DNA of 64,000 nucleotides, from contig NIVC01000300.1 of the NCBI GenBank assembly GCA_002269645.1, forward strand, positions 124,001 to 188,000, written 5' to 3'. The stretch is from Macrostomum lignano. Its lineage: Eukaryota. Both the position numbers and the translations under genes were made by a program. The notes under the pieces were generated by a model. It was not told the origin of the DNA, made no database searches, and saw only the letters and a list, made by a program, of their open reading frames with translations. Below, piece by piece: positions 1-63,224 of the stretch. Each line of letters begins with the position of its first letter. Position 1 is the stretch's first letter.

Positions 1-573
1 GCCTGTCCCCGCCGGTAGGGTGCCTGCAACGTAAGTAGCAGCACCTCCTGCACCGGCTCCGGACAGTAGGCCTCGGCGCGGATGACGTGGCCTGCCAGCT
101 GGAGTCGCCGACGGCGCAGCAGATCGCTAGGACGGGCCAGGCCGGCGCGATGATAGAGCGCCGTGTTGGTGACTCGCTCGTTGCCGATCTTGAAGGCGGC
201 GCGCAGCAGGCCAGCGTGCGCCGCGTCAACTTGAGCCTCGAGCGAGTCTGTCAGCGTCCAGGTCTCGGCGTTGTATAACAGGACGGTCTCGATCACCGCC
301 TGGAACAGCGCCGCCCTCTGGCGGTCCGGTAGGGCCTCGGACTGCAGGACTGACCTTATAGAACGAAAGGCAGCCCAGGCAAGTCCTCGGCGACGCCGCA
401 GATCCTCGCGGACGTCGGGAACCAGACCGCCGAGGTAGACGAACTGCTGACATCTTGGAAGCTCACTCGCCTGTCCGTTAGCGCCTCGGCAGAAGATTGC
501 AGCCTCGGTGTCGTCCGGCACGCATAGCACGACGGTCTTCTGCGTGTTGACCACCAAACGCAGAAGACCGTCG
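1..573 (-). mobile_element. 5'-truncated non-LTR retrotransposon (LINE); C-terminal RT/thumb region, runs off window edge
   Basis: Minus-strand translation LVVNTQKTVVLCVPDD...CQQFVYLGGLVPDVREDLRRRRGLAWAAFRSI...LFQAVIETVLLYNAETWTLT...LQLAGHVIR is typical of the end of a LINE RT. The 5' end carries a 16-bp fold-back (530-545 vs 558-573). Confidence 0.85.
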
Positions 574-1487
574 ACGCTCAAACGCACACAGCTTGGTGCG
601 ATTTCGCTATTCTCCGTCTTCGTTGCAGCAAAAATCGAATTCATATTATCGCTTGTCTTGTGTGGCTTTCCATTCCTGCATTGCTTAGCAAAATGGTTAG
701 CCTTACCGCACTTGGTGCACGATTTCCCCCAGGCTGGACATTTCTCCTTTCCGCGTTCGTGCTCACATCCGCAGAATTTGCAGATTGGGTGCTTCGCCAC
801 TATCTGACTTCGTTGAGCGGGTCCACCTGCCTGGCGGGCATCTGCGGCGGCAGTTTGCTTGGCCTTCTTGTAGCTCGAAACTCTTCGAACTGCAGAGATT
901 GTCGACGTCTCGCCCTTCATCGCGGCACAATTCTTCTTGGAGCTTTCCATTGACTCACAAATCGTCTTGGCTCTTTCTAGTGTCAGCTCGCTGCCTTCTT
1001 CCAGCAACTTCTCCACTGTGCTGTGATCTCGAAGCCCCATGACGATTCTGTCTCTGATCTGGCACTCCGCACATATACCACAGCAGCGCTCAAAGTTGCA
1101 TCGCGATGCCATTTCCTTTATTGCCACGTACCAGTCGCTGAACGATTGGCCCTCCATCTGATTCCGTAACGAAAACTCGCGGCGCTCGAATATTTCATTT
1201 CGCTGGCCCGTGATGAACAGCTCCAGGGCCTTGATGATCTCTCCGGCGTCGTTCTTGTTCTCCTCGGTCAGATGCGGCAAGCTGTCCACGACGCGCAGTG
1301 TCTCCATGCTCAGGCATTGGCGTAGCGCGAAAAGACGGTACTTCTTTTTCTCGTCCTCGTTGTCCAGACTGTTGAGTCCTGAGAGCTCCTCGAAGGCCTC
1401 CCACAGTAGCTTCCAATGTGGGTATAGCTCCTTCTGTGACTCGATGTCGAAGTGCGGCGCACTTCGGACGTCGATCTTGGGTGCCAT
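574..1487 (-). CDS. gag: Ty3/gypsy Gag (element B), truncated before protease
   Basis: ATG at 1487 follows an in-frame TGA at 1506-1508. Translation MAPKIDVRSAPHFDIE...RNQMEGQSFSDWYVAIKEMASRCNF...IRDRIVMGLRD...CPAWGKSCTKCGKANHFAKQC includes a CCHC knuckle. Absent from the ORF track because the frame has no stop before the window edge. Confidence 0.9.
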
Positions 1488-1510
1488 CTTGCACTTTTGG
1501 GCTTTTCACT

Positions 1511-1664
1511 TGGCTGCTTGCGATGCCATGTTGTGTACGAAGCCGAGCGGCTCAATATCGCGCAAACCTAAACTTTGCCCAGAGGGCTGTGCCGCGCTGT
1601 AGCCCACGCATATATTTCTACCATAGATATAAGGTTATAAGGGTACTGAGCCCAATACCCAACA
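1511..1664 (-). mobile_element. 5' LTR (1529-1664, 136 bp) and PBS of gypsy element B
   Basis: Minus strand reads TGTTGGG...ACAACA and is followed directly by a TGGCATCGCAAGC PBS-like sequence and then gag. It interrupts the RT of element A exactly at 1664/1665. Confidence 0.75.
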
Positions 1665-3468
1665 GGATGCACCTGTCAGCCAAAGGCATCCAACCAGCTG
1701 CTGAGAAAATCCGCGCAATGCAAGACTTCCGGCAGCCCGCCAATGTCTCAGAAGTTCGGTCGTTTCTCGGCACCGCAAACTTTCTGGCGAAATTCATCCC
1801 AAGATTCGCCGACGTGTCAGCCCCGCTGCGCCATTTGACCAAGAAGGGCCAGCCATGGGAATGGACTGCCAGCCACACTGAGGCGTTCAGCACAATCAAG
1901 AAGGCCATCGCCGGAGCCGACACGCTGGCGTTCTTCGACCGCAAGCGGCAGACGGAGCTTCTGGTGGACGCATCTTCCATCGGTCTCGGCGCCATCCTCA
2001 CCCAGAAGCAGCCAGACGGCAGCAGCAGACCCGTGGCCTACGCCAGATGTGTCAGCAGGTGCCGTGCCAAAGGGATTCAGCCTTCAGCAGATCTGAGACT
2101 CTTCAAGGACTGACACGGAGATCCAGGCTGCGCTCAGCGCGATCAAAACCGGCAGCTGGAACATGCTCGACCCGGTGCAACGCGCACTCAAGTCCAGCAG
2201 CAGCGAACTTTCCGAGAGCGACGGAATTCTGCTCCGCGGAGATCTCATCGTTGTCCCCGAGTCGCTGCGGAGACCGATACTGCAGCTGGCCCATACGGGA
2301 CATCTCGGTGCGGACAGAACCCTGAAGCGACTGCAGACCAAAGTCTGGTGGCCAAAGATGCGCAGCGACTGCAAAGTATTCGTCAAGTGCTGTGTCGGTT
2401 GCCAAGCAGCGGCCACGCACGTGCACCAGACGCCTTTGAAGCCGACGGAGATGCCGGGCGGACCTTGGCAACTGCTCGGCATGGACTTCTACGGCCCGGT
2501 GCAAGGTCAGATGCTGCTGGTCACCACGGACCTGTGCTCCAAGTACCCGGAAGTCGACATCATGCAGTCAACGACGGCCGGCAACGTGACACCGCATCTG
2601 AGACGGCTGTTCGGTCGGCACGGCATCCCTGCTGAGGTCATCACGGACAACGGACCGCCCTTTAACTCTGCCGACTTTCGCAGCTTCCTCAGCGGATACG
2701 GAGTTCATCATCGGCTCATCTGTCCGCTGCATCCGGAGTCCAACGGAGCCACCGAGCGTGTCAACCGCAGCATCGGGAAGGTCGTGAAGACTGCTGTCGC
2801 TGAAGGTCGGAACTGGAGAGAGGCCCTGGACGACTGGCTTCTGGCGTTCCGCACAACGCCTCACCGAGCAACTGGGCGGACTCCGGCCGAGCTCTTCATG
2901 GGCAGGCCGATCAACGACGGAATCCCAGCCAGCAGGCAGCCGAAGTCATCTGACGTCAGCCAGGAAGCCGTGAAAGATGAAGAGTGCGTTCGACAGGCGC
3001 TCGGCCGCAAAGAAGCACCGCATCGTTCCCGGCATGAGTGTTCTTCGCAAGCAGCAGGCACGCAAAAAAACGCAGCTGCCATTCGAAACTCAGCCATGGA
3101 CGGTGCAGGAGGTTCGAGGCGACACCTGCGTCCTACGGCGAGGCCAGCAGTATTGTATGCGGCACGTGACCCAGCTGCGGCCTCTGATGGAACCGGCGGG
3201 CCAGTCCACCGGCCAGTCCACCGGCCAGTCAGCCGGCCAGTCCGCCGGCCAGTCCACCGGCCAGTCCGCCGGCCAGTCCACCGGCCAGTCCGCCGGCCAG
3301 TTAGCCGGCCAGTCCGCCGGCCAGTCCGCCGGCCAGTCCGACGGCCAGTCAGCCGGTCAGTCCGCCGGCCAGTCCGCCGGCCAGGCCGCTAGTGAAGAAG
3401 CAGAGTCTGTGGCTCAGAGACGGCATCCAAGAGCAGCCCGCGACACGCCGAAGTGTTATACGAGTTAA
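1665..3468 (+). pseudogene. pol: Degenerate Ty3/gypsy pol (element A): RT C-terminus, partial RNase H, integrase
   Basis: VRSFLGTANFLAKFIP and LLVDASSIGLGAILTQ...PVAYA (RT/RNase H). Integrase HHCC (HTGHLG...CVGC) and core (LLGMDFYGP, ITDNGPPF, NGATERVN). Internal deletion near 2045, frameshifts near 2110 and 2975. Confidence 0.9.
3199..3386 (+). repeat. 12-bp tandem repeat (ggccagtccrcc) in the integrase C-terminal tail
   Basis: About 15 copies, encoding GQST/GQSA in the 2977-3468 frame. Confidence 0.9.
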
Positions 3469-3567
3469 GTAACTGATCCGCATTTCCTGAAGCGGCATAA
3501 CTCAAGCTGAAGCGGTGTACTTCGTAAACAGTCAATTTTCTTTAGTTCGAAGTTTTTTTAATTCCTT

Positions 3568-3787
3568 GGGGGGGGGGGAGAAGTGTAGGCAGCGCCTACT
3601 ATCGTGTGTGTTGGGGGGTTGTTAGCGGCTGCGCTGCGTGACTCTGCTAGCTCAACCCTTATGCGTACAATATCAAATGTGCATGGTGCGACTTTAACCA
3701 CCATTCTGACTCAGCTCAATAATTCAATAAATATACTGATCGCTATTATTCTCGCCTGCAAGCTTTCGGCAACTATCGACTACAACA
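3568..3787 (+). mobile_element. PPT (3568-3583) and 3' LTR (3584-3787) of gypsy element A
   Basis: G-rich tract ggggggggggagaag is followed by TGTAGG...TACAACA, with AATAAA inside. Confidence 0.75.
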
Positions 3788-3811
3788 AGCAGTCTAGCCT
3801 CGTTTCACTCA

Positions 3812-4318
3812 CTACAGCAGCCTCTTTGCAATAGGGACGAGAATGGCCAGCATTTTGTCTGTCACCGCCTCATCTTCAACAGCGATGCCATTGCTCAAAG
3901 CGGCCTCTCGGAAAAATACGATACGAGAATAAAATTTCAAAGGAGCTACTAAAAGGACTAAAGGACTAAAGCTAAAAAAGGAGCAACTTTCTTCAGCTCG
4001 CGCGAACTTACCGCGCACAAAGACGTCGCACAGGCCGGTGCTGACCCAGGCGTTGGCATTGGAAAACGCCACAAAGTCGAACAGCCGACAGGCCTCGACC
4101 AGCCAGTAGAAGCCGAAGCAGTCCGGCCTGCGGCTGCACACAAAGCTGCAGTGTTTGTCGCTGAGTGCGGGCTGCGAGCGAAACTCCGTCAGAGCGACAG
4201 CGCTGCCCGTCACGTTGGCGGTGAATTGAGCAGATCCGCCGGGGGTCTTCACCGCAGCACCCAACAGGGCCACAGGAACAATGATGGCGACAAGACGGCA
4301 GTGAAGGCTTTGCTGCAT
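3812..4318 (-). CDS. Small secreted PAN/apple-like domain protein; probable exons 4318-4012 and 3906-3812
   Basis: Signal-like MQQSLHCRLVAIIVPVALLGAAV precedes CSFVCSRRPDCFGFYWLVEACRLF, the PAN-type C-x3-C...C-x2-F...C pattern. Donor gtaagt at 4011 and a phase-compatible acceptor at 3907. The 105-nt intron is also readable in frame. Confidence 0.6.
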   Translation of the reverse strand: MQQSLHCRLVAIIVPVALLGAAVKTPGGSAQFTANVTGSAVALTEFRSQPALSDKHCSFVCSRRPDCFGFYWLVEACRLFDFVAFSNANAWVSTGLCDVFVRGKFARAEESCSFFSFSPLVLLVAPLKFYSRIVFFREAALSNGIAVEDEAVTDKMLAILVPIAKRLL

Positions 4319-5278
4319 TACGAGTATTTTTAGTGCGGCCGATGCGGGTTTTTTTTGAAAGTCCAACTCGAACTTGATGCAGCTGAAGCTTGTGCTTGCC
4401 GAGGTGCGAGCCCATTGTATGCTTGGCAACTGTGCTCGGACATGCCGCGGTGATAAAAGCAAAGCATTCTGATTGGCTGAATTCACTTGCATTGCTCCAA
4501 AGTATATACTTGAAAATTTATACTATTAACAAGATCAAACTATAGTTTCTATATAAATCTTTACTAGCACTGTTACCTACTCGAGCTTACTGAACTTACT
4601 CGAGCTTACTGTACTTACTCGAGCTTACTGTACTTACTCGAGACGTGTCTACCTTCTGGTTCTAAATTGATCCCTGGTTCCCTGGACTGACGCTCTCTAT
4701 AAAAGGAGGCGGATGGATACAACAAACTGCCGCCCATCCCAAGCGACTCCGGAATGTGCTGTTGTATCTCAGCAGAAGACATCCGGGCTTTCCACCATGA
4801 GCCTCACGGGCTACACGAGGCACCTTTTACTCCGTGAAAAACACCCGAAGCTAAATTAGCCATTTTTGTGGTCTAGACAGTTAAATGAGCAGCATTCTGG
4901 CTGCCAATGCCTGGCTTTAACAAATATCGGCTGCTCCACCTCCGGTGAAACCCATTCGTCTGTGAATGATGAGGCCTGCGAACTCGGGAACAGCTCGCGG
5001 TTTCTCCGGGCAACCAGACGAGTCACTTTCAACCCTAGCGCTGCAGAACCGCTTGGAGTTGATAGAGCATTTGTCCTTGTCTATGGCCTCACTCAGCCGG
5101 TAAAAGGCAACAAGGCGAACTGAAACGTTTGGAATCGTAAAACTTGACTTTTATGGGTTAAGATGAGCGAACCGGGCGCGAGTTTGTAAATATTGATTAT
5201 TGACACAAAGCTTGATTCCCTCAAGACGTCGAACTTCGCATAATTACTGAATATTTCATCCTTCATCCTTCGATCGAG

Positions 5279-5869
5279 ATGAAATCAGATTTCTTGTTAG
5301 TAGCGGTAATCTTGGTGCTTTCATTTCTTGGTAAGTCTGGTGGCTTAAGGTGGGAATAGTTAAAGATTTCTATGAACACTAATCTTTCAGTTAATTGCTG
5401 TAAACTTGAGGTCAAGAAAATAAGAGTGATAGCCGGAGTGACAATCAGTGATAACCGGAGTGACAATCAGACTTATAGCCGGAGTGACAATCAGACTGAT
5501 AGCCGGAGTGACAACCAGACTGATAGCCGGAGTGACAATCAGACTGATAGCCAGATTGACAATCAGAGTGATTGGCCGGAGTGACAATCAGATTGATAGC
5601 CGGAGTGACAACCAGAGTGATAGCCAGAATGACAATCAGAATGACAGCCAGAGTGATTATCGGAGTGACAGCCAGAACATCGTAGTGCAAGCCGAACTCT
5701 TTATCCTGCAGGTAGCACTTCAGGATGCACTGGTCGAAGAGACGCCGGCAGCAGCGTGCCCAAGTGCAAGAAGCTGAAGTCAAAGGAGTTTTGCATATTC
5801 GACAATGAGTGCTGCTCCGACAGATGCTTGCCATACACGAGGCTGAAGCCCTACCGCGACTGCGAATGA
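5279..5869 (+). CDS. Two-exon secreted cystine-knot (ICK/knottin-like) peptide precursor, 69 aa; exons 5279-5330 and 5712-5869
   Basis: Spliced product MKSDFLLVAVILVLSFLG-STSGCTG-RR-DAGSSVPKCKKLKSKEFCIFDNECCSDRCLPYTRLKPYRDCE*. Donor gtaagt at 5331, acceptor ctttatcctgcag at 5711, matching phase 1, C-C-CC-C-C framework, AATAAA near 6027. Confidence 0.8.
5428..5675 (+). repeat. ~24-bp minisatellite (gatagccggagtgacaatcagact) filling the knottin gene intron
   Basis: About 10 degenerate copies are visible. Confidence 0.9.
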
Positions 5870-6144
5870 ACAGGAGTTCAGCAGGTGATCTGTGTAATCT
5901 GGATGTCGCTACATGTAGGTACATTGTACAATGTTCAAAAGATCCTGTTTTATTGTGCGTGTATTTAATGTAAATTTGAATCTTTTCAACCATAATCGTA
6001 GATATTTTCTTTCATCTCTTACTGTTCAATAAAACTTGCATGGCGTACAGCTTTCAAATACTCGAAAAGAAAATTTCGTCGTTCTTTATGACGGCTTTCG
6101 ATGTGTGAACGTGTTTTTTCAGATCAAGTATCTATAAAGTCGAG

Positions 6145-6182
6145 TCTGTCTGTCTATCTGTCTGGCTGTCTGTCTGTCTTAG

Positions 6183-6239
<57 letters not shown>

Positions 6240-6332
6240 GCCTGTCTGTCTGTCTGTCTGTCTGTCTTAGTGTCTGTCTGTCTGTCTTAGTGTCTGTCTG
6301 TCTGTCTTAGTGTCTGTCTGTCTGTCTGTCTG
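6145..6332. repeat. (TGTC)n microsatellite
   Basis: Direct reading. Confidence 0.95.
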
Positions 6333-6939
6333 TAGCTGGTCTCCGCCGATCTACAATGCATGTAACTAAGCTTTTGTGCAGTTTCGAATCTCAATGTCAT
6401 TCCGGCTTATCGGACTGACAATTAGAGTGGCTTAGTCAATGGAGGTTTAAATTGAGGTCAAGTTTCCTTTTTGACATGTGATGTATGTACCCACACTGTA
6501 CAGCACATGTAAATGTATGCACAATACAAGAACAAGCAGTTGCACCCGTCTTTGCTTTGGAAAATGTGTACTTTTTCTCAGTACTAGCTACTTATTGTAA
6601 CAAATTATAAGTAGCGATTGCAACGGAATTGTAAACATGAGGGCGTCAACAAGCTATTAGTAAGATATATGTACACGAATTTAGATGTACAGTATTATAC
6701 TAAGTACGTCCCGGCTATTATTTTATTGTCCTAGGGTCCCACACTAAGATAATTAGTTAACTGTAAAGTAAAGTGTGAATGCGCGAATCTAATGAAGCCT
6801 CTTTCTATTTCAGTGAGTATTACGCTCGTATAGCAAAAAACACCCCGCGGCAGGCACACCGCGGGGCGCTCAAACCGGCCGGGAGAAGCAAACCGAGGAG
6901 AGGCTCGACTTAGTCTTAGACAGCACTTAGACAGCACTT

Positions 6940-9420
6940 TTCTCTACTGTATTCATTTTGACTATAAATTGCTATGCCAGGTTTAACAAATTTCTCAATG
7001 ATTAGCAAGAGAGTGGCCTTGTCTTATAAGACAATAGGTCAAATGATAATGTTGAAAGATATTGTCTTATTCTACATACTAGGCCTATTCTAAAAATCTA
7101 GCTCTAGATACTTTTCTAAGAACCTTCATAGTGTTTTAGCTTTTTTCCAAAAGGGGTTCATTGATATTAATCTTACAATTTATCCAGTGCAGTGCCTTTG
7201 ACTTGAAGGCTGTCCTTTTTATATTTGAACTATTTATCTAATCTCCTAAGTAAAGTTATACTAATTGATGATATATTTAGACTCAAATATTTATATTTGA
7301 ATTAAGGATTTACATTAAATGGTTTTGTGCAAATTGTTCAAATATTCTTATTGTGGCCATTCTAGTGTGTGCAGCAGTGAGCCCCCTTATTTATATACTT
7401 AAAATATACTTTTATCATAGGCGACACAGGTGATATTTCTTCTTACTCTATATATTTCAATCCCACCATTAAGCCACCAAGTTGTAACAAGCATTTTGGC
7501 TCTCTCTTTATTAATCCCACTGCTGCAACCAAGTTGTTGCAGGTCTACTTCTGTCTTGCCACCATAGTTGTCTCTCTATTATTCTATTAAATTTCTACTG
7601 CTGACAATAAGGTTAATGCTTGGTTTGTATTAGTTTCCTAACTGTTTCTTAGAATCCCATTTAAGATGTTTCTGGTACCGTTTAAGGTATTAGTCTGGTA
7701 GCGTCTAATATGTCTGGTAGTGTCTAGTGTATGGCCTAAGTAGTCTACTGGTACTTTTACTGTTCTTCCAATCTCTAGGGTGTCATCTAGATCAAAGGGT
7801 CACGGCTCTTCTTTCTCTGGAATTCCTTTGTATATTTCCCTAATCCTTTCTCTTAGTAAGTTTCTGAGCACTTCAACTTTTAGTTTTATAAATAACTAAC
7901 TTGGTAAGAATTTCAAGTTTTAAGTCTGAGAATATTACTATGAATTCAGCAAACAAACAAGCTAAGCACTAGTTGGTTTATTTAGGAGCAAATTGGCTTG
8001 TATATATAGGGTCTGGGAGGCTACATTTATAACAAATTATATTTATTGTCAATATTTCGCGTAGTAAAACTATTTACTAGTAGCTTACTAGTACTAGTAG
8101 CTAAATTATTTCTAGTTTTGTGCGTGGATTCAACATGGCTAATAATTGACTATTTTATTTGTATAAATCACAATAATAACTACACTACTATTATATATAT
8201 TTATTAGGCACATAAAAATACAAAAAGAAAAGCTTATAGGAGTATAGGCTAGCACACTTATTTCAATAGAAACCTCTCAAATATCAATGAGATAACCTAG
8301 ATAAAAGAGCATAATATTGATTAGGTAAAGATTTGACTTGAAAAAGTAACTTTATTATTCTAACTAACACTGTGCCATTTCTTATGGATACTACTATGTG
8401 CAGGATTTAGTATAGATTTCTTGCATTAAAAGACAAAACTATCCTGCAGAAATATAGGTCACAGATCTTATACATATTGGACAAAGGACAGTTTTTAGAA
8501 ATAGACCATTTTAGCATAAGAATGATATCCAGTTGTTTTCATTCAAAAACCTCATACCATAAGGTGCACCAAATCTTTAATGGTTGCTAGTGGTTTTAAT
8601 AAATTGATAAAAAAGTAACTAGAAGATTTACAATCTGCCAACATTGCTACTACTGCTAAAATGATTTATTTAGGCTTTATTAAAAGTGAAAATCAACATA
8701 GAATATATTCTTTCGACGCGTTTCAAGGGTCCAACTAGGGCCATCTTCAGGTCTGGACCAAAATGCGTTGAAAGAATATAATGTATGTTGATTTTCACTT
8801 TTATTTTTCTTCGTTAAAAGTGGCTTTTCCATTATCCACTGGGAAGCAGAGCTGGAGAAGCTGTGGCTGGGTCTAGACTAGCAATGAGTGCTGCTTCATT
8901 TTAAATAGGTTGGCAGTGCACTCTATCTCACATTGTTGCTTGAATGCCTTTAGCCAAATATGGATGGCCTATTATGTGTGCTTTACAATCTTTACTTTCT
9001 TAAGCTCACTGCTCAATCTGTTGCTGCAGGCTGTCGTAATTATTCTCTTGTCTTGGTGTGCCATGTCCTAGCTGATGTTGTCCTTGTAGAAGCTCATCAG
9101 GTGGATCTTTAGACATGTTGCTTCCCGCATCTTGCCTTGGTATCAACTAACAGAAGTTATTGGTTGCTGCTGCTGTGACAGCTTCTGCTGACTCAGTAGA
9201 CTACTTATTGCAATGCCATTCCCCAGCCTATACACCAGGATGCCAAAGTTAAAGTTCATGCATCATGACACATGCTATGATATAAAATATCCGAGTTTGC
9301 CAGTTGCAGCTTTTTCAAAATCAACACTATATTCTATTAAATATTTGATATTCTATAAATACATGGTTAAAAATTGATTAGCCACTAGATTGAACTTTTA
9401 AATAGAAATGACTTTGTTTA
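6940..9420. other. AT-rich, CpG-depleted block; probable decayed transposon relic
   Basis: CpG is almost absent and TpA is abundant compared with the CpG-rich flanks. No ORFs over 60 aa. A 43-bp-arm inverted repeat lies at 8681-8803. Confidence 0.45.
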
Positions 9421-9473
9421 TATTGTTACAAAAACTTTACTAATGCCATCTGCAGAGCGACTGTCTCAAGGTG

Positions 9474-9794
9474 ATGGAGTCGGCAAGCAGACAGCAAGCG
9501 CTGGCCTCTCTAGCCAGCATTGAGGAACCCATGGACCTCATCCGCGTGTCCTTAGACGAAATTGTTCACGTGAAGATGCGCAACGAACGGGAGCTGAGAG
9601 GCCGGCTGCACGCTTTCGACTCGCATCTCAACATGGTGCTCGGCGACGTTGAAGAGACTGTCACCACGCTGGAGATTGACGAGGAGACCTACGAGGAGGT
9701 GTACAAAGCCACGAAGCGGACGGTGCCGATGCTCTTCGTTCGAGGCGACGGAGTCATTCTGGTGTCGCCTATTGGGTCAAGTCAGGCCGCCTGA
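9474..9794 (+). CDS. LSM3: U6 snRNA-associated Sm-like protein LSm3, coding region in one exon
   Basis: [83 protein letters not shown] matches the LSm3 signature. Branch point and acceptor (ctaat...tgcag) at 9455; AATAAA cluster near 10065-10078. Confidence 0.95.
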
Positions 9795-10641
9795 GGAGCT
9801 GAGAGTCTCGCAGTGCTGAACTGACTGCTAAAATAGCAAAAGTTGCAGTAGGATAGATCAGTTTTGTTCATTTTTTCTACACAAAATCCTTAATCGTGGG
9901 TAAACTCGCATGATTTCAATTATATAGCTATGGTTCTTAGAAGCCACTGAAAATTCAAGCGTTTTCACAGTGAAATTATCATTCTGCGTTTAGTACCAGC
10001 AGTAATATATGCGTATACTACTACTATCAATGTCTTTAGTGATTTTGTAAGACGATTATTAACTAAATAATAAATAAACTGATGTCCCCGTGGCCTGTCT
10101 CTGTGTCTATATTTTGTGCATGAGCAGTTTTACACTGAACAAATTTTTGTGCTCTTTTTATGCTTGCTTTATTTTAATACGGAAAGAAGTCCATGCATTC
10201 TTGAAGAATCGAATGGGGGGATTCTTGAGCCGACAAGCCAGTTGAGACTCTTGAGTTGGGAGTTTTTCAACTCAATAATTGCAATTGAGCTGATCAATTG
10301 GCAATGGCCATACATATTAGCAATGGACGCTCAGGGAGCTCCCAAGTCGCCTATCGCCTGCACCTGGCCTCTTCTCCGGCCCTCCGTTCCTATTGTTGTT
10401 GCTGCTGGCCCAATGCTGGTAGACTGGCTGGCTGTGCGCAGCCTTGGAGCAATGGAAGCTCAGCAACCCTGCTACAGAGCCACCGCAATATGCGGATATA
10501 AGCCTGGCGCTGCGGTTGTGCAAACCGAGGGTGGCACGGACTAGTTGGAACTGAATCTTGAGGTCTCTTACGTTGATTCGCGCTGCTTAGTGTGTTTGAA
10601 GCAGCGAGCCGCTTCGGCGAAGGAAGATCTTGTTTTGGATT

Positions 10642-39683
<29,042 letters not shown>

Positions 39684-46400: not shown

Positions 46401-49400
46401 TCAAGGTGTAAAGTATTTTATCGACGGCTGAGAGGCAAATCGAACATGGCGAGAACTTCTTGAATGAGTATTAGCGGCTGGTGACTCATTAGGCGGAGCA
46501 GTAGGCTCTGGAAGGGTCTCCGGTGGCGGCGGCGGTAGCGTAGCTGGTTTAAGTCGGTCGATTGACACTGTGGTGGGCCGGCCGTTGATCTCTAGCGTCA
46601 TTGTTGTTTCATGTCTGCTAAGAACAGCGAACGGGCCTTGATAAGGTGCTTCAAGCGAACGCCTCACGCGATCTAACCGTAGCCACACGTGTGTGCAGGA
46701 GTCCAGCGCGGTCGGCATATGGGTGGGGACCGGACGAGTTCGCGGTAGGCGGTAGGGGAAAAACATTTGGTGGAGCTTGGTCGATAGCTCTGTCAGAGTC
46801 GAAGTGTCGGCCACTACTTGCGGAACCATGGGTTGCTCTCCAGTAACAAGTGAGAAAGGTGATGATCCGGTTTCGTCCGCAAAGATACGCATTCCAAGAA
46901 GAACGAGAGGCAGTTGGCTCAACCAGTATTTTCCGCGTGCTTTTAGGCCCGTCTTCAACGTTCTATGAGCGCGTTCGACGATGCCGTTGGCTCGCGGATT
47001 GTATGAAGAAGTTCGGATATGGTGAATCCCCAGGTGCTGCGTCAGGTTTTTCATGAGCTCGGCTCGGAACTGCGTCCCTTGGTCGCTAATCAATGTAAGC
47101 GGTGGTCCGAAGCGGGCAATCCAGGATGCTAGGAAAGTCCGCGCGACGGTCTCAGCCGTGGTGTCCATGACGGGAGTAGCCTCGATCCAGCGTGTGTATG
47201 AATCCACCATGGTCAGCAGGTATCGGGGTTTTGGTCCAACCGCGTCGGATTCGGGCGGCGTCAATGGTCCGACTAGGTCGATGTGCACCGTCGTGAATCG
47301 TTGCGATGGTACTGGTAACTGGTGGAGCGGCCGGTGAATATGCTTGCTAACTTTGCATTGCTGGCAGCGCTCACATTCAGTGACCCACTTCTTGATGTCG
47401 GCGAACATATTAGGCCAGAAAAAACGGTATCCGACAAGCCTCTGTGTCGCTTTTACTCCCGGGTGCGCCAAAGTGTGTAGCGAATCAAACACTTTTCGGC
47501 GAAGCGGTCCTGGTACTTCAGGGCGTGGGTTGGCTTGTGAAGTCTCGCAGCGAAGCGGGCACTCTGGGATTCCGATGTCAAAGTGCTTGAACTGGCCGGC
47601 CGGAGTGTCTTCAGGCGTTAGATCTTTCTGAGCTCTTGCAATAGCCGGAAGGTCAACGGCTGTTGGGACATCTTCTAAGAGTCGCACGTTGTTGGTCTGG
47701 GTAACTGAGGGTGGTTCTGGACGAGACAGTGCGTCGGCTACTACGTTGTCTTTACCGGCGATGTATACAATGTCGAGAACGTACTCAGTTATCGCTGAAA
47801 GTTGGCGCTGTTGGCGGTCAGAGAAACGCTGTTTCCGATTCTTGAAAGCTCCCACGATTGGCTTGTGGTCACAGAACACCGTGACAGGGCGACCTTGGAC
47901 CATGTGCTTCCAGGTTTTGACGGCGGCGAAAATAGCCAGTAGTTCTCTGTCGAACGTGCTGTAGGCTCTCTCGGTATCCGACAGTTTGCGCGAGTAAAAA
48001 GCTAGGGGTGCAGACTTGTCGTCTACCACTTGATGTAGGGCTGCGCCTAAGGCCGTTGAGCTTGCGTCCGTAGTGATAGTGAGCATTGCGCTAGGTTCGG
48101 GGAACGCTAAAGTTACGGCCTCAGCCAGGCTGTTTTGAAGCAGTTTCCAAGCTTCGTCATGCTGGTTCGTCCAGACGAACTGACTCGAACTGACGAGTTG
48201 GCGAAGAGGCTGTACTACTTGGGCGTATGCGGGGATGCAACGTTGGTAGAAACCAAACATTCCCAGATAGCGCTGGAGCGTCTTTTGATCGGTCGGGGCC
48301 TGCAGTTTGCGAAGGGCCTCCACTCGAGTGGGAAGTGGCTTGATTCCCTCGGCTGATACGAGGTATCCCAGAAATTCCACTGAGTCTCGGAAGAACTGAC
48401 ACTTTGCTGCGTTAACCCTCAGACCTTTGTCCGTTAGACGCTGAAGGATGGCTTGCAGATGTTGCTCGTGTTCTTGTCGAGAAGTGCTGTGCACTAGGAT
48501 GTCGTCGATGTATGAAACGACAAAGGGGAAATCTCGAAAGATTGCGTCGACGAACCTCTGGAACGTGCTAGCTGCGTTGCGCAGTCCGAAGGGCATTCGA
48601 AGGTATTCGAAAGATCCAAAAGGGGTGCAGATTGCGGTCTTTTCTATCGCGTCTTCAGCCATGGGGACGAAGTGATAGGCCTTGACGAGGTCAAGGGTGC
48701 TGAATACTTTCGACCCATGCAGCTGGTTGTGGAAGTGGTTAATGTTCGGTATGGGGTACCGATCGGGCTTGGTCACGGCGTTCAAAGCTCGATAGTCACC
48801 ACAAGGGCGCCAAGATCCGTCTTTTTTTCTCACCATATGAAGGGGCGATGCCCACGGGCTGGAAGATGGTCGGACGATTCCGAGTCGAAGCAGCTTGTCA
48901 AACTCTTCCTTTGCAACAGTGAACTTTTCCGGTGACAGTGGTCGTGGTCGGCGGAAGATCGGCTCGCCTTCCGTTTCGATCGGATGTCGGACGCCTGTTG
49001 CGGATGGGGTCGTGTAGTCGGGCGCCTCTAGTACGCGTGGAAACTGGGTGAGCGGGTTTGATGGTTCCATTTCCGTTGTCACGTTGATTTGTGGAACTGG
49101 ATCGGAAGAGCAGTTCAGGGCTGTGGATAATTCCGTTACTGGGTCTGTGATGCGTCTCGACTTAAGGTCGATGATCAAACCGAACTTTACGAAGAAATCC
49201 GCTCCGAGAATCGGTGCCGTATTAGTGACGATGAATGTTGCTGGGTATGGTCGCCGGAGCCCCGGAATAGAGAGAGTCAGGCAGCATTGTCCAAAGGTAC
49301 GGATCTCATGTCCACCAATGCTGCGCAACTTCACGGGTGTCGGAGTTAGCAGATTTTGAGGGACGTACTGTAGAGGCAGGAGTGACCGTTCGGCTCCAGT

Positions 49401-49616
49401 GTCAACAATAAACGAAACCATGGTGCGAAGAACGTTGCAACGGAGTAACAAAGTGGTGGCCTTGCTCTGGTCACGGGTCGGCCAGGGCACGTGACCGACT
49501 AGTTTGAAGCACTTTCTAGAGTTGGGCTGTTTGCACGCGAGTGATCTGGTGTTGTCTGGCGGCTGCTGAGCATCGTTGTGGGTTTGGGACCGGGCCATTT
49601 GCACCAAGGTCAGCAC
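46401..49616 (-). CDS. pol: Pol polyprotein: protease, RT, RNase H, integrase with GPY/F motif
   Basis: IVDTGA, WASPLHMVRKKDGSWRPCGDYRALN, SYIDD, TTDAS, HTLAHPG...CERC, VHIDLVGP, ISDQG, NGIVERAH, APYQGPF. The frame is -1 relative to gag. Confidence 0.97.
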   Translation of the reverse strand: MLTLVQMARSQTHNDAQQPPDNTRSLACKQPNSRKCFKLVGHVPWPTRDQSKATTLLLRCNVLRTMVSFIVDTGAERSLLPLQYVPQNLLTPTPVKLRSIGGHEIRTFGQCCLTLSIPGLRRPYPATFIVTNTAPILGADFFVKFGLIIDLKSRRITDPVTELSTALNCSSDPVPQINVTTEMEPSNPLTQFPRVLEAPDYTTPSATGVRHPIETEGEPIFRRPRPLSPEKFTVAKEEFDKLLRLGIVRPSSSPWASPLHMVRKKDGSWRPCGDYRALNAVTKPDRYPIPNINHFHNQLHGSKVFSTLDLVKAYHFVPMAEDAIEKTAICTPFGSFEYLRMPFGLRNAASTFQRFVDAIFRDFPFVVSYIDDILVHSTSRQEHEQHLQAILQRLTDKGLRVNAAKCQFFRDSVEFLGYLVSAEGIKPLPTRVEALRKLQAPTDQKTLQRYLGMFGFYQRCIPAYAQVVQPLRQLVSSSQFVWTNQHDEAWKLLQNSLAEAVTLAFPEPSAMLTITTDASSTALGAALHQVVDDKSAPLAFYSRKLSDTERAYSTFDRELLAIFAAVKTWKHMVQGRPVTVFCDHKPIVGAFKNRKQRFSDRQQRQLSAITEYVLDIVYIAGKDNVVADALSRPEPPSVTQTNNVRLLEDVPTAVDLPAIARAQKDLTPEDTPAGQFKHFDIGIPECPLRCETSQANPRPEVPGPLRRKVFDSLHTLAHPGVKATQRLVGYRFFWPNMFADIKKWVTECERCQQCKVSKHIHRPLHQLPVPSQRFTTVHIDLVGPLTPPESDAVGPKPRYLLTMVDSYTRWIEATPVMDTTAETVARTFLASWIARFGPPLTLISDQGTQFRAELMKNLTQHLGIHHIRTSSYNPRANGIVERAHRTLKTGLKARGKYWLSQLPLVLLGMRIFADETGSSPFSLVTGEQPMVPQVVADTSTLTELSTKLHQMFFPYRLPRTRPVPTHMPTALDSCTHVWLRLDRVRRSLEAPYQGPFAVLSRHETTMTLEINGRPTTVSIDRLKPATLPPPPPETLPEPTAPPNESPAANTHSRSSRHVRFASQPSIKYFTP

Positions 49617-50347
49617 GTACGGGCTTGTGAAGCGTAGAATAGATGGCCATTACAGATCTTAGGTCTCTTACGATAGGAGCGCTGTTGCCGGTGATCTCCT
49701 TCGTACGCCTGCCTAGGCTTGAACGCGCCGTGCGGTCTTGAATCCCTGGCTTCGGACGTGCGCTGAATGGGTAAAAACGGAGTTCGGCTGCCCGCGACGG
49801 CTAACATGCTGTCGGCGATTTTGGCGAAGTCTTCTAGCGGAGATTTTTCATGACCGACCAACGCTGAACGGATGTGCGTTGGGAGCGCCGTGAGCAGGCG
49901 TGACTTGATGATAGACTCGTCGGCTGCTAAACCCACTTCGATGAAGCGGCGCTTAATGTCAGTTACCAATTGCGAAGGGCGTTTGTCGCCGAGTTCTACT
50001 GCTGCAAGGGCTTCCTCGATACGCTGGTGGCGGTTGGCGCGCAGTGAGTCTAGAACAGCTGTTTTGAGTCGGTTGTATTCGACGATGTCTATGTCGATGT
50101 AGCAGGCAACATCCTCTGGGAGAGCGGCCAGTGCGTGGTGGAATTTGGTGCTGGCGGAGCTGATTCCAGCCAGGGTAAATTGTGATTCGAGTTGGCGGAA
50201 CCAAATCTCGGGTGCTTGACGGTAGAACGGCGGTGGTCTAATTGTGGCGCGTTGTACCGACGCTACCGGTTCCGGTATGGCGTTCTCCGAAGAAGCTGCC
50301 GCAGGTGGAGTGTCTGATGGAGGTTGTTGACGTTGGGTGTCTTCCAT
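49499..50347 (-). CDS. gag: Gag with CHCC motif, interrupted by TGA at 49610-49612; natural-looking end TAG at 49499-49501
   Basis: PPFYRQAPEIWFRQLESQF...LGDKRPSQL; CNGHLFYASQARTC*PWCKWP completes C-x2-H-x9-C-x3-C if the stop is read as a codon. Confidence 0.9.
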
Positions 50348-54304: not shown

Positions 54305-55810
<1,506 letters not shown>

Positions 55811-56169
55811 TTAGCTACTTAGTTTTAGTATTCTTGAGAGTTATCTTCATTATGAACTTTTCCCTCTATTTGCGCTTGTAATATTCTTTCAAGCTACTCC
55901 TCGCATTCAGTGAGTAGCTTATAAGGACATGCTTTTTTTGCGAATGAATTGTTTACACAAAGAAAAATTTCGTAGAAAAGAGGAATATTTTAGCCAGGAC
56001 AGTCAATTAATAGCTGTTAATTAATTTTGTTAAAATCGTGTTTTTTATCTGTTGATTGTGCCTTTGATATACTTTTCTTGACCGCTTTATTAAATAAACA
56101 AAAATCTGGAAAAAGAATTTTCAGTAATCTGAAGAGCCTTGCACTGGGATTTTGTAGAATTAATCGGTT

Positions 56170-58119
56170 ATAATAATCTCCTTTGCCTGCCGATTTGCGC
56201 TGGTCGGAGCTCAGATCGGATTGGCACAAGTTGTGCAGGTAGGACACGGCAGAATTTGCAGCACCAATTGTAAACAATGTCGTCGCTCCTTGTGAGACAC
56301 CTCAGCTGGCTTAGCGACCTCTGGCGCTTGCTGGCCAGCGGCTGGGTAGCTGGAAAATATTAGACTGATGAATTTAAATATGTCAATGACTACCAGAGGT
56401 TGATGGGCGAGGATTTTAGGTAAAAGAAGCCCCAAGCTCCCTTCCAGTTCAGATGGGCTGCAGGGTCCATGGTTCAGTTGGCTCCAAGCTCCCTTCCAAT
56501 CCAGATAGGCTGCAGGGTCCATGGTTCAGTTGGCTCCAAGCTCCCTTCCAGTCCAGATAGGCTGCAGGGTCCATGGTTCAGTTGGCTCCAAGCTCCCTTC
56601 CAATCCAGATAGGCTGCAGGGTCCATGGTTCAGTTGGCTCCAAGCTCCCTTCCAGTCCAGATAGGCTGCAGGGTCCATGGTTCAGTAAGCTCGAAGCTCC
56701 CTTCCAGTCCAGGTGGGCTTCAGGGTCCATGGTTCAGTTGGCTCCAAGCTTCCTTCCAGTCCAGGTGGGCTGCAGGTCCATGGTACAGTTGGCTCCAAGC
56801 TTCCTTCCAGTCCAGGTGGGCTTCAGGGTCCATGGTTCAGTAAGCTCCAAGCTCCCTTCCAGTCCAGGTGGGCTGCAGGGTCCATGGTTCAGTAAGCTCC
56901 AAGCTCCCTTCCAGTCCAGATAGGCTGCAGGGTCCATGGTTCAGTAGCCTCCAAGCTCTCTACCAGTCCAGATAGTCTGCGGAGTCTATGATTTAGTAAA
57001 CTCGAAGCTCCCTTCCAGTCCAGGTGGGCTGCAGGTCCATGGTTCAGTTGGCTCCAAGCTTCCTTCCAGTCCAGGTGGGCTGCAGGGTCCATGGTTCAGT
57101 AAGCTCCAAGCTCCCTTCCAGTCCAGGTGAACTGCAGGTCCATGGTTCAGTTGGCTCGAAGCTCCCTTCCAGTCCAGGTGGGCTGCAGGGTCCATGGTTC
57201 AGTAAGCTCCAAGCTCCCTTCCAGTCCAGGTGGGCTGCAGGGTCCATGGTTCAGTTGGCTCGAAGCTCCCTTCCAGTCCAGGTGGGCTGCAGGGTCCATG
57301 GTTCAGTAAGCTCCAAGCTCCCTTCCAGTCCAGGTGGGCTGCAGGTCCATGGTTCAGTTGGCTCCAAGCTTCCTTCCAGTCCAGGTGGGCTGCAGGGTCC
57401 TTGGTTCAGTAAGCTCCAAGCTCCCTTCCAGTCCAGGTGGGCTGCAGGGTCCATGGTTCAGTTGGCTCCAAGCTCCCTTCCAGTCCAGGTGGGCTGCAGG
57501 GTCCATGGTTCAGTAAGCTCCAAGCTCCCTTCCAGTCCAGGTGGGCTGCAGGGTCCATGGTTCAGTAAGCTCGAAGCTCCCTTCCAGTCCAGGTGGGCTG
57601 CAGGGTCCTTGGTTCAGTAAGCTCCAAGCTCCCTTCCAGTCCAGGTGGGCTGCAGGGTCCATGGTTCAGTTGGCTCCAAGCTCCCTTCCAGTCCAGGTGG
57701 GCTGCAGGGTCCATGGTTCAGTAAGCTCCAAGCTCCCTTCCAGTCCAGGTGAACTGCAGGTCCATGGTTCAGTAAGCTCCAAGCTCCCTTCCAGTCCAGA
57801 TAGGCTGCAGGGTCCATGGTTCAGTAGCCTCCAAGCTCTCTACCAGTCCAGATAGTCTGCGGAGTCTATGATTTAGTAAACTCGAAGCTCCCTTCCAGTC
57901 CAGGAGGGCTGCAGGGTCCATGGTTCAGTAGCTCTTAACTGATCCCTTCCAGTCCAGGTCGGCTGCAGGGTCCATGGCTAACTCACTCAGCCGCCGCAAC
58001 GCCGTCCCTCGCTTGTCTTCGTACAGGCCGGCGGTGCTGTCGTAGACGCCGCCCCAGTCGGCGCAGGCGGCGGTCACCTCCTCGATCAGGCGGAGGCCGC
58101 ACTCGGTCAGCCAGCGGGC
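56170..58119 (-). pseudogene. Insulin-like peptide paralog 2, damaged; B-chain exon 58119-57987, A-chain exon from 56349
   Basis: ARWLTECGLRLIEEVTAACADWGGVYDSTAGLYEDKR | TTQPLASKRQRSLSQLRCLTRSDDIVYNWCCKFCRV[frameshift]SYLHNLC. Intron phases match paralog 1. No signal-peptide exon was found. Confidence 0.8.
56430..57975. repeat. 52-bp minisatellite filling intron 2 of ILP paralog 2
   Basis: gctccaagctcccttccagtccaggtgggctgcagggtccatggttcagt(tg/aa). Confidence 0.95.
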
Positions 58120-60330: not shown

Positions 60331-60929
60331 CCCCGCCCCAGCTTCCGGCGCCGCTTTGGCGCTCGACTTTCAAAAGAGTCCCCCACGAAAAAGAGGAGAT
60401 TTTGCCGCGTTTTTGCCGACTCAGTGGCTGCCGGATTTGCTCAATCAATTATTTCGCTCTGCTAGTGCAGTAATTGAATGTAAACAGCAAATTCTGTTTA
60501 AATACAGTGCATGTATGAAGCCTCGGGACTAAAAATAGTTAGTGAGTTTGGCCGCGGTGCCTCCATGTGGATCAGCTCTATGCAGATGCAGACGCTAATC
60601 CTCACCCTATGTGTCAGTCTCCCGCTGACTCAATCTTAATCTCAAAAACCTCAAAAACAGGGGAGTGGCATGCCTTATAGGGGAGAAGAACTGGCTTTAA
60701 ATCCCCTTAATGCATTGATTAGAGACTACGCAAATCCCAATGACATTCAAGCGGCACCCGGTAGGGTAACACTCAGTTCTCTGTAGAGTACTCAGAGCTG
60801 CCATATCAGAGTCTCAGAGGCCCTCAGATCACGCCGCAAAGAACACCCCCCGCCCAAAAAAACAAAAGAAGGAAGCCATCAAGACGCGCCGGTGTCCATC
60901 AATAAACAGTGATGCTTACCAAGACACAA

Positions 60930-62715
60930 TGGAGCCCACGATGAGACAGAGGCGGCACTTTCTAGGAAACAGGGACAGGGGCGCCATCCCAGAGACAGTG
61001 GCGCCACCCCAGAAACAGGGGCGCCACCCCAGAGACAGAGGCGGCACCCAAGAGAAAGGGGCACCACCCAAGAGACAGGGGCGCCACCCCAGAGACAGGG
61101 GCGCCACCCCAGAGACAGAGGCGGCACCCAAGAGACAGAGGCGCCACCCAAGAGACAGGGGCGCCACCCAAGAGACAGGGGCGCCACCCAAGAGACAGGG
61201 GCGGCACCCCAGAGACAGAGGCGCCACCCAAGAGACAGGAGCGCCACCCAAGAGACAGAGGCGCCACCCAAGAGACAGGGGCGCCACCCAAGAGACAGGG
61301 GCGCCACCCCAGAAACAGAGGCGCCACCCAAGAGACAGGAGCGCAATAAACAGGGAAGCGCCAGACAGAAGTGCCCTCGCCAAAAAGACAGGGGCCTCCA
61401 CCCAAGAGGCAGGGGCGCCACCCAAGAGACAGGGGCGCCACCCAAGAGACAGGGGCGCCACCCAAGAGACAGGGGCGCCATCCAAGAGACAGGGGCGGCA
61501 CCCAAGAGACAGGGGCGCCACCCAAGAGACAGGGGCGCCACCCCAGAAACAGAGGCGCCACCCAAGAGACAGGAGCGCAATAAACAGGGAAGCGCCAGAC
61601 AGAAGTGCCCTCGCCAAAAAGACAGGGGCCTCCACCCAAGAGGCAGGGGCGCCACCCAAGAGACAGGGGCGCCACCCAAGAGACAGGGGCGGCACCCAAG
61701 AGACAGGGGCGCCACCCAAGAGACAGGGGCGCCACCCAAGAGACAGGGGCGCCACCCAGAAACAGAGGCGCCACCCAAGAGACAGGAGCGCAATAAACAG
61801 GGAAGCGCCAGACAGAAGTGCCCTCGCCAAAAAGACAGAGGCCTCCACCCAAGAGGCAGGGGCGCCACCCAAGAGACAGGGGCGCCACCCAAGAGACAGG
61901 GGCGGCACCCAAGAGACAGGGGCGCCACCCAAGAGACAGGGGCGCCACCCAAGAGACAGGGGCGCCACCCCAGAAACAGAGGCGCCACCCAAGAGACAGG
62001 AGCGCAATAAACAGGGAAGCGCCAGACAGAAGTGCCCTCGCCAAAAAGACAGAGGCCTCCACCCAAGAGGCAGGGGCGCCACCCAAGAGACAGGGGCGCC
62101 ACCCAAGAGACAGGGGCGGCACCCAAGAGACAGGGGCGCCACCCAAGAGACAGGGGCGCCACCAAGAGACAGGGGCGCCACCCCAGAAACAGAGGCGCCA
62201 CCCAAGAGACAGGAGCGCAATAAACAGGGAAGCGCCAGACAGAAGTGCCCTCGCCAAAAAGACAGAGGCCTCCACCCAAGAGGCAGGGGCGCCACCCAAG
62301 AGACAGGGGCGCCACCCAAGAGACAGGGGCGCCACCCCAGAAACAGAGGCGCCACCCAAGAGACAGGAGCACAATAAACAGGGAAGCGCCAGACAGAAGT
62401 GCCCTCGCCAAAAAGACAGAGGCCTCCACCCAAGAGGCAGGGGCGCCACCCAAGAGACAGGGGCGCCACCCAAGAGACAGGGGCGCCACCCCAGAAACAG
62501 AGGCGCCACCCAAGAGACAGGAGCGCAATAAACAGGGAAGCGCCAGACAGAAGTGCCCTCGCCAAAAAGACAGAGGCCTCCACCCAAGAGACAGGGGCGC
62601 CACCCCAGAAACAGAGGCGCCACCCAAGAGACAGGAGCGCAATAAACAGGGGAGCGTCAGACAGAAGTGCCCTCGCCAAAAAGACAGAGGCCTCCACCCA
62701 AGAGGCAGGGGCGTC
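60930..62715. repeat. 20-bp satellite (ccacccaagagacaggggcg) with a higher-order spacer unit
   Basis: Monomer blocks are punctuated by the recurring ggagcgcaataaacagggaagcgccagacagaagtgccctcgccaaaaagac segment. Confidence 0.95.
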
Positions 62716-63224
62716 ACCAAGCCTCAACATCTGTAGAGTAAATGCCTAAGCGCGATAAATTTATTAAATGAAAAAGCATTCATTGTTTTTAATTTTGCTT
62801 TATTGAAAGTTAAATGCGGCGGGGGTTTTCCGCTGCCAACCAGCCGGCCGCCCCTGCAGAAGTTATCCTGCAGGACTTCAACTGTCACACCGGGCCAATT
62901 CTGTTTGCCAAACCGCCCACGCATTCATCTGCCCGACTGTGCCCGCCTAGCAACAGAAAGAGCTCGGGGATCTCAGGTATCAAAGACTGCAGAAGTAGGC
63001 CTGCTTTTTTCGCGCCAATTTTCAAGCTGTGAATCTGCAAAACTTACTGGCGCTTTTTTGCGCCGCTTTCGCTTTGAGTCTCGCCTGACGGAACCCGACG
63101 CTTCCTGGCTATAAAGCGATTCTTTGTTGCAAAAAAGCGAAAATGAAAGTCGCTTCATGCCCGTGAAAAGTCCTTTTGCCTTTTGCTGTTTGCCTCAATG
63201 TGTTCTAGTTAATGTCCAAGTATA

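Follow-up and report, generated by a model that had tools for sequence, protein, structure and literature searches.

The window analyzed here is a stretch of 64,000 nucleotides of the Macrostomum lignano genome, and all positions given below refer to it. On its plus strand, at 5279-5869, lies a two-exon gene whose spliced exons translate into a 69-aa precursor of a cysteine-rich secreted peptide. The features of this gene are as follows.

5279-5330, plus strand: exon 1 (52 nt; the ATG, 17 codons and 1 nt), coding for MKSDFLLVAVILVLSFL, which comprises the signal-peptide n- and h-regions
5331-5711, plus strand: phase-1 intron of 381 nt, GTAAGT...TTTATCCTGCAG
About 5419-5673, no strand assigned: intronic 24-nt minisatellite found by TRF, consensus AATCAGACTGATAGCCGGAGTGAC, ~10 copies (5419-5656)
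5712-5869, plus strand: exon 2 (158 nt)
5712-5725, plus strand: start of exon 2, coding for the signal-peptide c-region (G)STSG, assigned from the sequence and the -3/-1 small-residue rule
5726-5740, plus strand: CTGRR, holding a seventh Cys and a dibasic site; a pro-segment of 5 residues or, alternatively, the first residues of a secreted form of 47 aa
5741-5866, plus strand: putative mature peptide of 42 aa and six Cys, DAGSSVPKC...RDCE (4.88 kDa, pI 8.3, net charge +2)
5867-5869, plus strand: stop codon TGA, from the translation, one codon past the last Cys
6028-6033, plus strand: AATAAA, by sequence match a likely polyadenylation signal, 159 nt beyond the stop

Genomic surroundings

Several other features lie in the window around the peptide gene.

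2163-3392, plus strand: fragment of an LTR-retrotransposon integrase (Integrase_H2C2 and rve), with the peptide gene ~2 kb downstream
9471-9794, plus strand: single-exon gene of the LSm family, downstream of the peptide gene, 107 aa from a GTG
About 10630-30000, plus strand: very large gene with VWA, VWA_2 and TIL domains, downstream of the LSm gene
18010-18459: interstitial, telomere-repeat-like array of the hexamers GGTTTG/GGGTTT/GGGTTA, ~74 copies
46401-50347, minus strand: pol-type ORF of 1071 aa with protease, RT, RNase H and integrase

The integrase fragment enters a 12-nt tandem repeat at its 3' end (3199-3389) and contains a chance out-of-frame C-C-CC-C-C pattern at 2473-2565. At the allelic locus, the LSm gene is annotated as a 102-aa LSM protein and the VWA/TIL gene as a protein of >1621 aa. 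The first ORF of the latter (10630-11601) crosses a CT-rich 26-nt repeat that codes for a Ser/Pro/Leu-rich repeat, and a clean VWA exon is present at 28247-29245; the product may function in the extracellular matrix, in mucus or in adhesion. A DUF7041 ORF of 245 aa stands right before the pol-type ORF on the minus strand, and the element looks like a Ty3/gypsy-like LTR retrotransposon whose coding capacity is apparently intact.

Mini- and microsatellites account for 44 TRF rows with a score of at least 300 in the window. Tandem repeats are exceptionally dense, for example at 14322-15595, 19889-20576, 24013-24763, 33095-34171, 54318-55824, 56427-57977 and 60974-62640; the types include a CT-rich tract of 1.3 kb, (GAGT)172, (AGTT)188, a 20-mer in 54 copies, (TTAG)376, a 52-mer in 30 copies and a 20-mer in 86 copies. 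These repeats produce strong local GC and AT skews and many spurious long ORFs (e.g., 60916-62730 and 33143-34645). Given this saturation with tandem repeats, a minisatellite inside an intron is ordinary for the M. lignano genome.

Structure of the peptide gene

Joining of the two exons (5279-5330 and 5712-5869) yields a CDS of 210 nt, and the product is MKSDFLLVAVILVLSFLGSTSGCTGRRDAGSSVPKCKKLKSKEFCIFDNECCSDRCLPYTRLKPYRDCE*. At the donor site, TTG is followed by GTAAGT; at the acceptor site, TTTATCCTGCAG is preceded by a pyrimidine tract and followed by G, and the phases of the two sites match. The cis-splice motifs that are enriched in M. lignano are GT[G/A]AG and CAG, and both ends of the intron fit them (PMC8629364). 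Trans-splicing of a spliced leader (SL) onto the AG that lies right before the ATG was also considered; this idea was dropped because the acceptor motif of the species, [T/C]TNCAG, is missing at that position. The 24-nt minisatellite of the intron has no second occurrence within the 64-kb window.

Read without splicing, the frame that opens at the ATG meets a stop after 26 codons. In the ORF list, the plus strand at this site has no entry at the default cutoff of 60 aa and, at a cutoff of 20 aa, only pieces of 26 aa and 37 aa, the second of which starts with GTG. The first-pass annotation had described a 69-aa precursor encoded by two exons on either side of a minisatellite-filled intron, and our own splicing and translation reproduced all three elements. 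It had also described the gene as invisible to the ORF track. This description holds for the unspliced ORF list but not for the annotation of the genome, where the gene is public as BOX15_Mlig026414g1 / A0A267GL20.

The sole ORF of more than 150 aa at this site is on the minus strand, a frame of 182 aa (5445-5993) that runs through the minisatellite. That this frame, and not the spliced one, is the true gene is scarcely credible: its first part is antisense to the 3'UTR and exon 2, and the rest is a repeat of 8 residues to which the minisatellite gives rise; Pfam has no match for it, and the transcript-based annotation has no gene on the minus strand. It was rejected as a repeat artefact.

A second copy of the gene and its transcript-based annotation

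A word-indexed search of 5.8 billion proteins with the spliced product returned a single match, PAA85982.1 / UniProt A0A267GL20, described as hypothetical protein BOX15_Mlig026414g1 [Macrostomum lignano]. This protein is also 69 aa long and is 99% identical to the window product, the sole difference being D67G, and its splice junctions are the same. It is encoded on NIVC01000299.1, a 332-kb contig of GCA_002269645.1, which aligns to positions 573-12249 of the window at about 91-98% identity. From this alignment, we take the copy on NIVC01000299.1 to be another allele, homeologue or assembly version of the same gene. Exon 1 is identical in sequence in the two copies. The intron of the NIVC01000299.1 copy has four more minisatellite units (96 nt), and there are three intronic point differences, all inside the minisatellite. 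With ~10 units in the window and ~14 in the GenBank contig (10140-10500 of the allelic locus), the minisatellite (about 5419-5673) behaves as a VNTR and is usable as an allele or homeologue marker. The coding differences are one synonymous and one nonsynonymous substitution; dN/dS between the copies is uninformative on selection because there are just these two.

The annotation of GCA_002269645.1 was built solely from transcripts, namely a de novo transcriptome and RNA-seq assemblies guided by the genome, with removal of noncoding and repeat-overlapping transcripts (Wudarski 2017, PMC5730564). As the annotation was made exclusively from transcripts (PMC5730564), a spliced mRNA exists for this gene. 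The question of a spliced transcript, by which the first-pass annotation proposed to judge the gene, is therefore largely answered by the identically spliced CDS in GenBank, whose annotation drew on transcripts only. We found no expression record for Mlig026414 in a full-text search of the literature or in the supplements of the M. lignano expression papers examined. The peptide gene at 5279-5869 is a real gene, and it is already public as an uncharacterized hypothetical protein.

Signal peptide and proposed processing of the precursor

The N-terminus of the precursor consists of an MK-SD n-region with a Lys, a hydrophobic run of 13 residues, FLLVAVILVLSFL, and a GSTSG c-region, as delimited by rule. 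Over nine residues, the Kyte-Doolittle mean of the signal region reaches a maximum of 3.8. By the same rule-based reading, all of the parts of a secretory prepropeptide are in place: n-, h- and c-regions and a site with small residues at -3 and -1. Signal peptidase is predicted to cut after S21 or G22. Exon 1 would provide the hydrophobic core of the signal, and the phase-1 intron would divide it from exon 2, which codes for all else. A phase-1 intron between the signal core and the remainder of the precursor is common in secreted-peptide genes.

Co-translational cleavage of the signal at about residue 21/22 would release the product into the secretory pathway. The CTGRR segment would then probably be cut off at its dibasic site by a protease of the prohormone-convertase type, leaving a mildly basic peptide of 42 residues and 4.9 kDa. 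The C-terminus of the mature peptide is without a Gly for amidation. Two features of the precursor are awkward, namely the odd seventh Cys and a pro-segment that, at 5 residues, is unusually short. In an alternative reading, the RR site would be left uncut and the secreted form would be a peptide of 47 residues and seven Cys (CTGRRDAG...), the N-terminal Cys of which would be unpaired and would form a disulfide-linked homodimer or a link to a partner protein. Besides the shortness of the putative pro-segment, this alternative draws on the cleavage site itself, T-G-R-R followed by D, which is without the furin motif R-x-[KR]-R, and on the presence of the seventh Cys in both gene copies. However, the conservation of this Cys carries no weight because the two copies are near-identical, and in toxin-like and neuropeptide precursors, maturation is usually signalled by a dibasic RR that directly adjoins the start of the cysteine-rich domain. 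We regard secretion of the uncut form as unlikely, and prefer the reading in which the cleavage at RR would remove the seventh Cys together with the pro-segment.

The cysteine framework and its occurrence by chance

Past the RR, the six cysteines of the mature region fall within 33 residues and are spaced C-x8-C-x5-CC-x3-C-x11-C, the seventh Cys being that of CTGRR. Their order and span agree with the knottin class, for which C-C-CC-C-C or an equivalent arrangement inside ~25-50 residues is expected. This framework, as given in the first-pass annotation, was recovered in our own translation. All six frames of the window were scanned for stop-free segments with exactly six Cys in a C-C-CC-C-C arrangement, with generous ranges for the loops; composition-preserving block shuffles served as the control. 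Three matches were obtained in the window, compared with an expectation of 0.07 per shuffled window; the pattern alone would occur by chance in ~1 window in 14. The matches were the gene at 5279-5869, its own antisense and one out-of-frame segment inside the retrotransposon integrase ORF.

The antisense match lies at 5715-5795 on the minus strand within exon 2 and is also a stop-free C-C-CC-C-C; it is apparently a by-product of a sense strand rich in Cys and Ala codons. Its presence is a caution for scans that use the pattern alone.

The framework at the gene exceeds chance; it also coincides with a signal-peptide exon, canonical splice sites that are in phase, a stop codon one codon past the last Cys, an AATAAA and an identical independent annotation.

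Relatives of the peptide

In a Pfam scan at E<=10, run with both the precursor and the mature peptide, there was no match to Conotoxin (PF02950), Toxin_18, Conotoxin_I2, UPF0506 (PF11703) or any other knottin model, and the gathering threshold of Conotoxin PF02950, 25.1 bits, was not reached. The lone Pfam match of the peptide was to Tryp_inh (E=0.045), which is under the cutoff of that model and was not retained.

When 1.84 billion representative proteins were searched exhaustively with phmmer, five matches reached E<=0.001. One was the GenBank copy. Three others, to two repeat proteins (one K/S/D-rich, one phage-fibre-like) and an LRR protein, were discarded as compositional noise. The fifth was a secreted Anopheles protein of 397 aa (LOC125948376 / A0A2M4CIE0; E=8e-4), in which five stretches were matched. 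This protein is composed of six repeats of C-x6-C-x5-CC-x3-C-x6-C and is recognized by Pfam Conotoxin PF02950 (66 bits) and UPF0506 PF11703; its cluster includes a protein with the name "phenoloxidase inhibitor-like." When a profile of five Anopheles repeats was aligned to the window peptide with hhalign, a probability of 93.9% was obtained over 21 columns, from CysII to past CysV. In a sequence search of the PDB, the only near-significant match (E=0.025) was chain A of 6PX7, a 34-residue "Venom polypeptide" aligned from CysI to CysV (KCKK..E.C...ECCS.RCL.Y). Presumably, 6PX7 is an assassin-fly knottin.

We compared these scores with those of 2000 permutations of the peptide in which the non-Cys residues were shuffled and the cysteines were held fixed. 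The real score was reached by 2/2000 shuffles against the HMM of the Anopheles repeats (17.4 bits for the real peptide, shuffle mean 1.2) and by 1/2000 against the 6PX7 fragment (17.8 bits, shuffle mean 4.9). The resemblance to knottins thus goes past the spacing of the cysteines. It is weak but real, and would reflect either distant homology or shared constraints of the fold.

The likeness to the Anopheles multi-knottin proteins extends to secretion, the C-C-CC-C-C arrangement, identical middle loops (x5, CC, x3) and a common motif, [E/D]-x-C-x5-[DE]CCS-x2-CL-x-[FY]. The differences are considerable. The Anopheles proteins are ~400 aa long and contain six tandem repeats joined by linkers, whereas the window peptide is a single domain; loop 1 has 8 residues in the window peptide and 6 in Anopheles, and the last loop 11 and 6, respectively; and the Anopheles protein passes the Pfam Conotoxin and UPF0506 models, both of which the window peptide fails. 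With 6PX7 chain A, the positions from CysI to CysV align, including ECCS-RCL-Y, but the score is marginal, loop 1 contains a two-residue gap, the C-terminal loop is unaligned, and the organism and its biology are other ones. UPF0506 (PF11703), whose members are mainly Schistosoma proteins, is a comparable family among Platyhelminthes: its members are small cysteine-rich secreted proteins, and the model also matches the same insect repeats, but the window peptide has no match to it even at E<=10.

The O-superfamily conotoxins of cone snails (framework VI/VII) and the ICK toxins of spiders share with the window peptide the C-C-CC-C-C arrangement, a precursor built in the order signal, pro-region, basic site and mature peptide, and a length of 25-45 residues. 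However, there is no detectable sequence relationship to either group, and their pro-regions have ~20-40 residues, compared with 5 in the window peptide. The term "conotoxin-like," which the first-pass annotation had used, is therefore apt for the cysteine framework but not for family membership, as the Pfam Conotoxin models gave no match. The peptide would operate in the manner of a knottin prepropeptide. By these comparisons, the nearest measurable relatives are the insect knottin repeats, with the peptide itself falling outside the curated families tested (Conotoxin, Conotoxin_I2, Toxin_18 and UPF0506).

No orthologue or paralogue was present among the phmmer matches in the 1.84 billion representatives, a search in which short peptides of ~30% identity are invisible at database-wide E-values. 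The tblastn search for paralogues that had been proposed covered the window and the allelic locus of 20.7 kb; with the signal peptide, the mature peptide or exon 2 as query, none was found. On this evidence, the peptide appears to be lineage-restricted.

A gene with so short an ORF, with no orthologue in protein searches and in surroundings rich in retrotransposon fragments and satellites might be transcribed without being translated, or its ORF might be fortuitous in a noncoding or repeat-associated RNA, in which case there would be no peptide. We consider this very improbable. This ORF combines a signal peptide of textbook form with an in-phase intron placed exactly where the signal region meets the mature one and with a known six-Cys framework; the stop comes right past the last Cys, and the similarity to knottin domains is better than chance. 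Moreover, the GenBank "coregenes" left out noncoding and repeat-overlapping transcripts (PMC5730564).

The fold of the mature peptide

The six C-terminal Cys would form three disulfides, most probably in the ICK arrangement I-IV, II-V and III-VI, in which the third bond would pass through the ring closed by the other two. Framework VI/VII usually indicates an ICK, and the mini-granulin fold is adopted where every loop has just 2-4 residues (PMC11035057). Since the loops of the window peptide are 8/5/0/3/11 residues long, the ICK is favored over the mini-granulin fold. The mini-granulin conotoxins TxVIIB, H-Vc7.2 and Phi-MiXXVIIA have framework VI/VII in common with the peptide, but their loops are all of 2-4 residues (PMC11035057); membership of this group was rejected, as uniformly short loops are what defines it.

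In accordance with a proposal of the first-pass annotation, the structure was predicted with AlphaFold2 from the single sequence. The model is of only moderate confidence (pLDDT 76.5, pTM 0.45) and has strands at 18-20, 23-26 and 36-37, the first two of which form a hairpin at CysII-CysIV and not the classic hairpin at CysV-CysVI. Foldseek searches with this model gave 0 matches in the PDB and only noise in BFVD, a 42-mer being a short query that is poorly served by the method; the prediction thus yielded a model but no usable structural match. AlphaFold is known to mis-assign disulfides in disulfide-rich peptides (Raffaelli et al. 2024, PMC11035057).

It is unlikely, in our estimation, that the same gene encodes the same secreted peptide with a non-ICK fold or connectivity, such as a stacked hairpin like that of mini-granulins or another three-disulfide isomer, the framework being a coincidence. 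The mini-granulin fold is documented for some framework VI/VII conotoxins (PMC11035057), the main hairpin of the AlphaFold2 model is in the wrong place for a classic ICK, and neither Pfam nor Foldseek lends support to a knottin. However, loops of 8/5/0/3/11 residues stand against 2-4 throughout in the mini-granulin cases, and the similarity beyond the cysteines is to bona fide knottin-family domains.

Loop 1, with 8 residues, is slightly above the classical ICK consensus length. An insulin/relaxin-like reading was also examined, as CC-x3-C is shared with this family. The insulin/relaxin pattern is a B-chain with C-x11-C, a connecting peptide and an A-chain with CC-x3-C-x8-C. The spacing in the window peptide (C-x8-C, 5 residues before CC, then C-x11-C) rules this reading out because it leaves no room for a B-helix and a connecting segment.

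The first-pass annotation had assigned the peptide to the inhibitor cystine knots. The framework and the weak similarity to insect knottin domains beyond the cysteines lend this assignment some support and make it plausible, while no Pfam model and no Foldseek match supports it. We conclude that the fold is probably that of a knottin, and think it fairly likely that the mature peptide contains a true cystine knot. Taken as a whole, the best explanation of the locus, and one to which we give reasonable credence, is a small secreted pre(pro)peptide with a six-Cys domain of the knottin type.

Discussion

By analogy with other knottins, the peptide would be an extracellular ligand or inhibitor, rigid and resistant to proteases, with a protein such as a channel, receptor or enzyme as its target. 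The first-pass annotation had proposed a toxin, an antimicrobial or a seminal-fluid peptide, and the analysis yielded no evidence on any of these functions. Every functional role considered here is one that we infer, and the weights given to the roles are rough. To our knowledge, M. lignano is a grazer of diatoms and has no known venom apparatus; hence, a predatory toxin would not be the first reading to consider. A defensive or antimicrobial secretion of a gland is the role to which we tentatively lean. A reproductive peptide of the seminal fluid and an endogenous signalling peptide are each unlikely, and to the same degree. An enzyme inhibitor of the type of the insect phenoloxidase inhibitors is rather doubtful, and the chance that the role is some other one appears small. 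Nothing in the analysis points to an unusual mechanism.

A more specific and decidedly speculative proposal, in which we place little confidence, is that the gene encodes the first characterized knottin-fold peptide of a free-living flatworm. The peptide would be a Macrostomum-restricted orphan expressed in a specialized gland (e.g., of the prostate, epidermis/rhabdites or pharynx). It would then either be transferred to mates or released on prey and microbes as a ligand of channels or receptors, or act, in the manner of phenoloxidase inhibitors, as a regulator of the tyrosinase-based tanning of the eggshell. A literature search found no paper that joins Macrostomum with knottins or conotoxins. 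If the proposal is true, a scaffold of the toxin type would be in use in a nonvenomous animal that is genetically tractable by RNAi and transgenesis.

The locus also illustrates how short two-exon genes for secreted peptides are missed by ORF scans, recovered by transcript-based annotation and then left unclassified as "hypothetical protein." Knottins rank with the most widely recruited peptide scaffolds, as toxins and antimicrobials as well as enzyme inhibitors and hormones draw on them, and they are a framework for drug design. A confirmed knottin of M. lignano would widen the phylogenetic spread of this scaffold, and RNAi, in situ hybridization and transgenesis in this species make the native function of the peptide directly testable.
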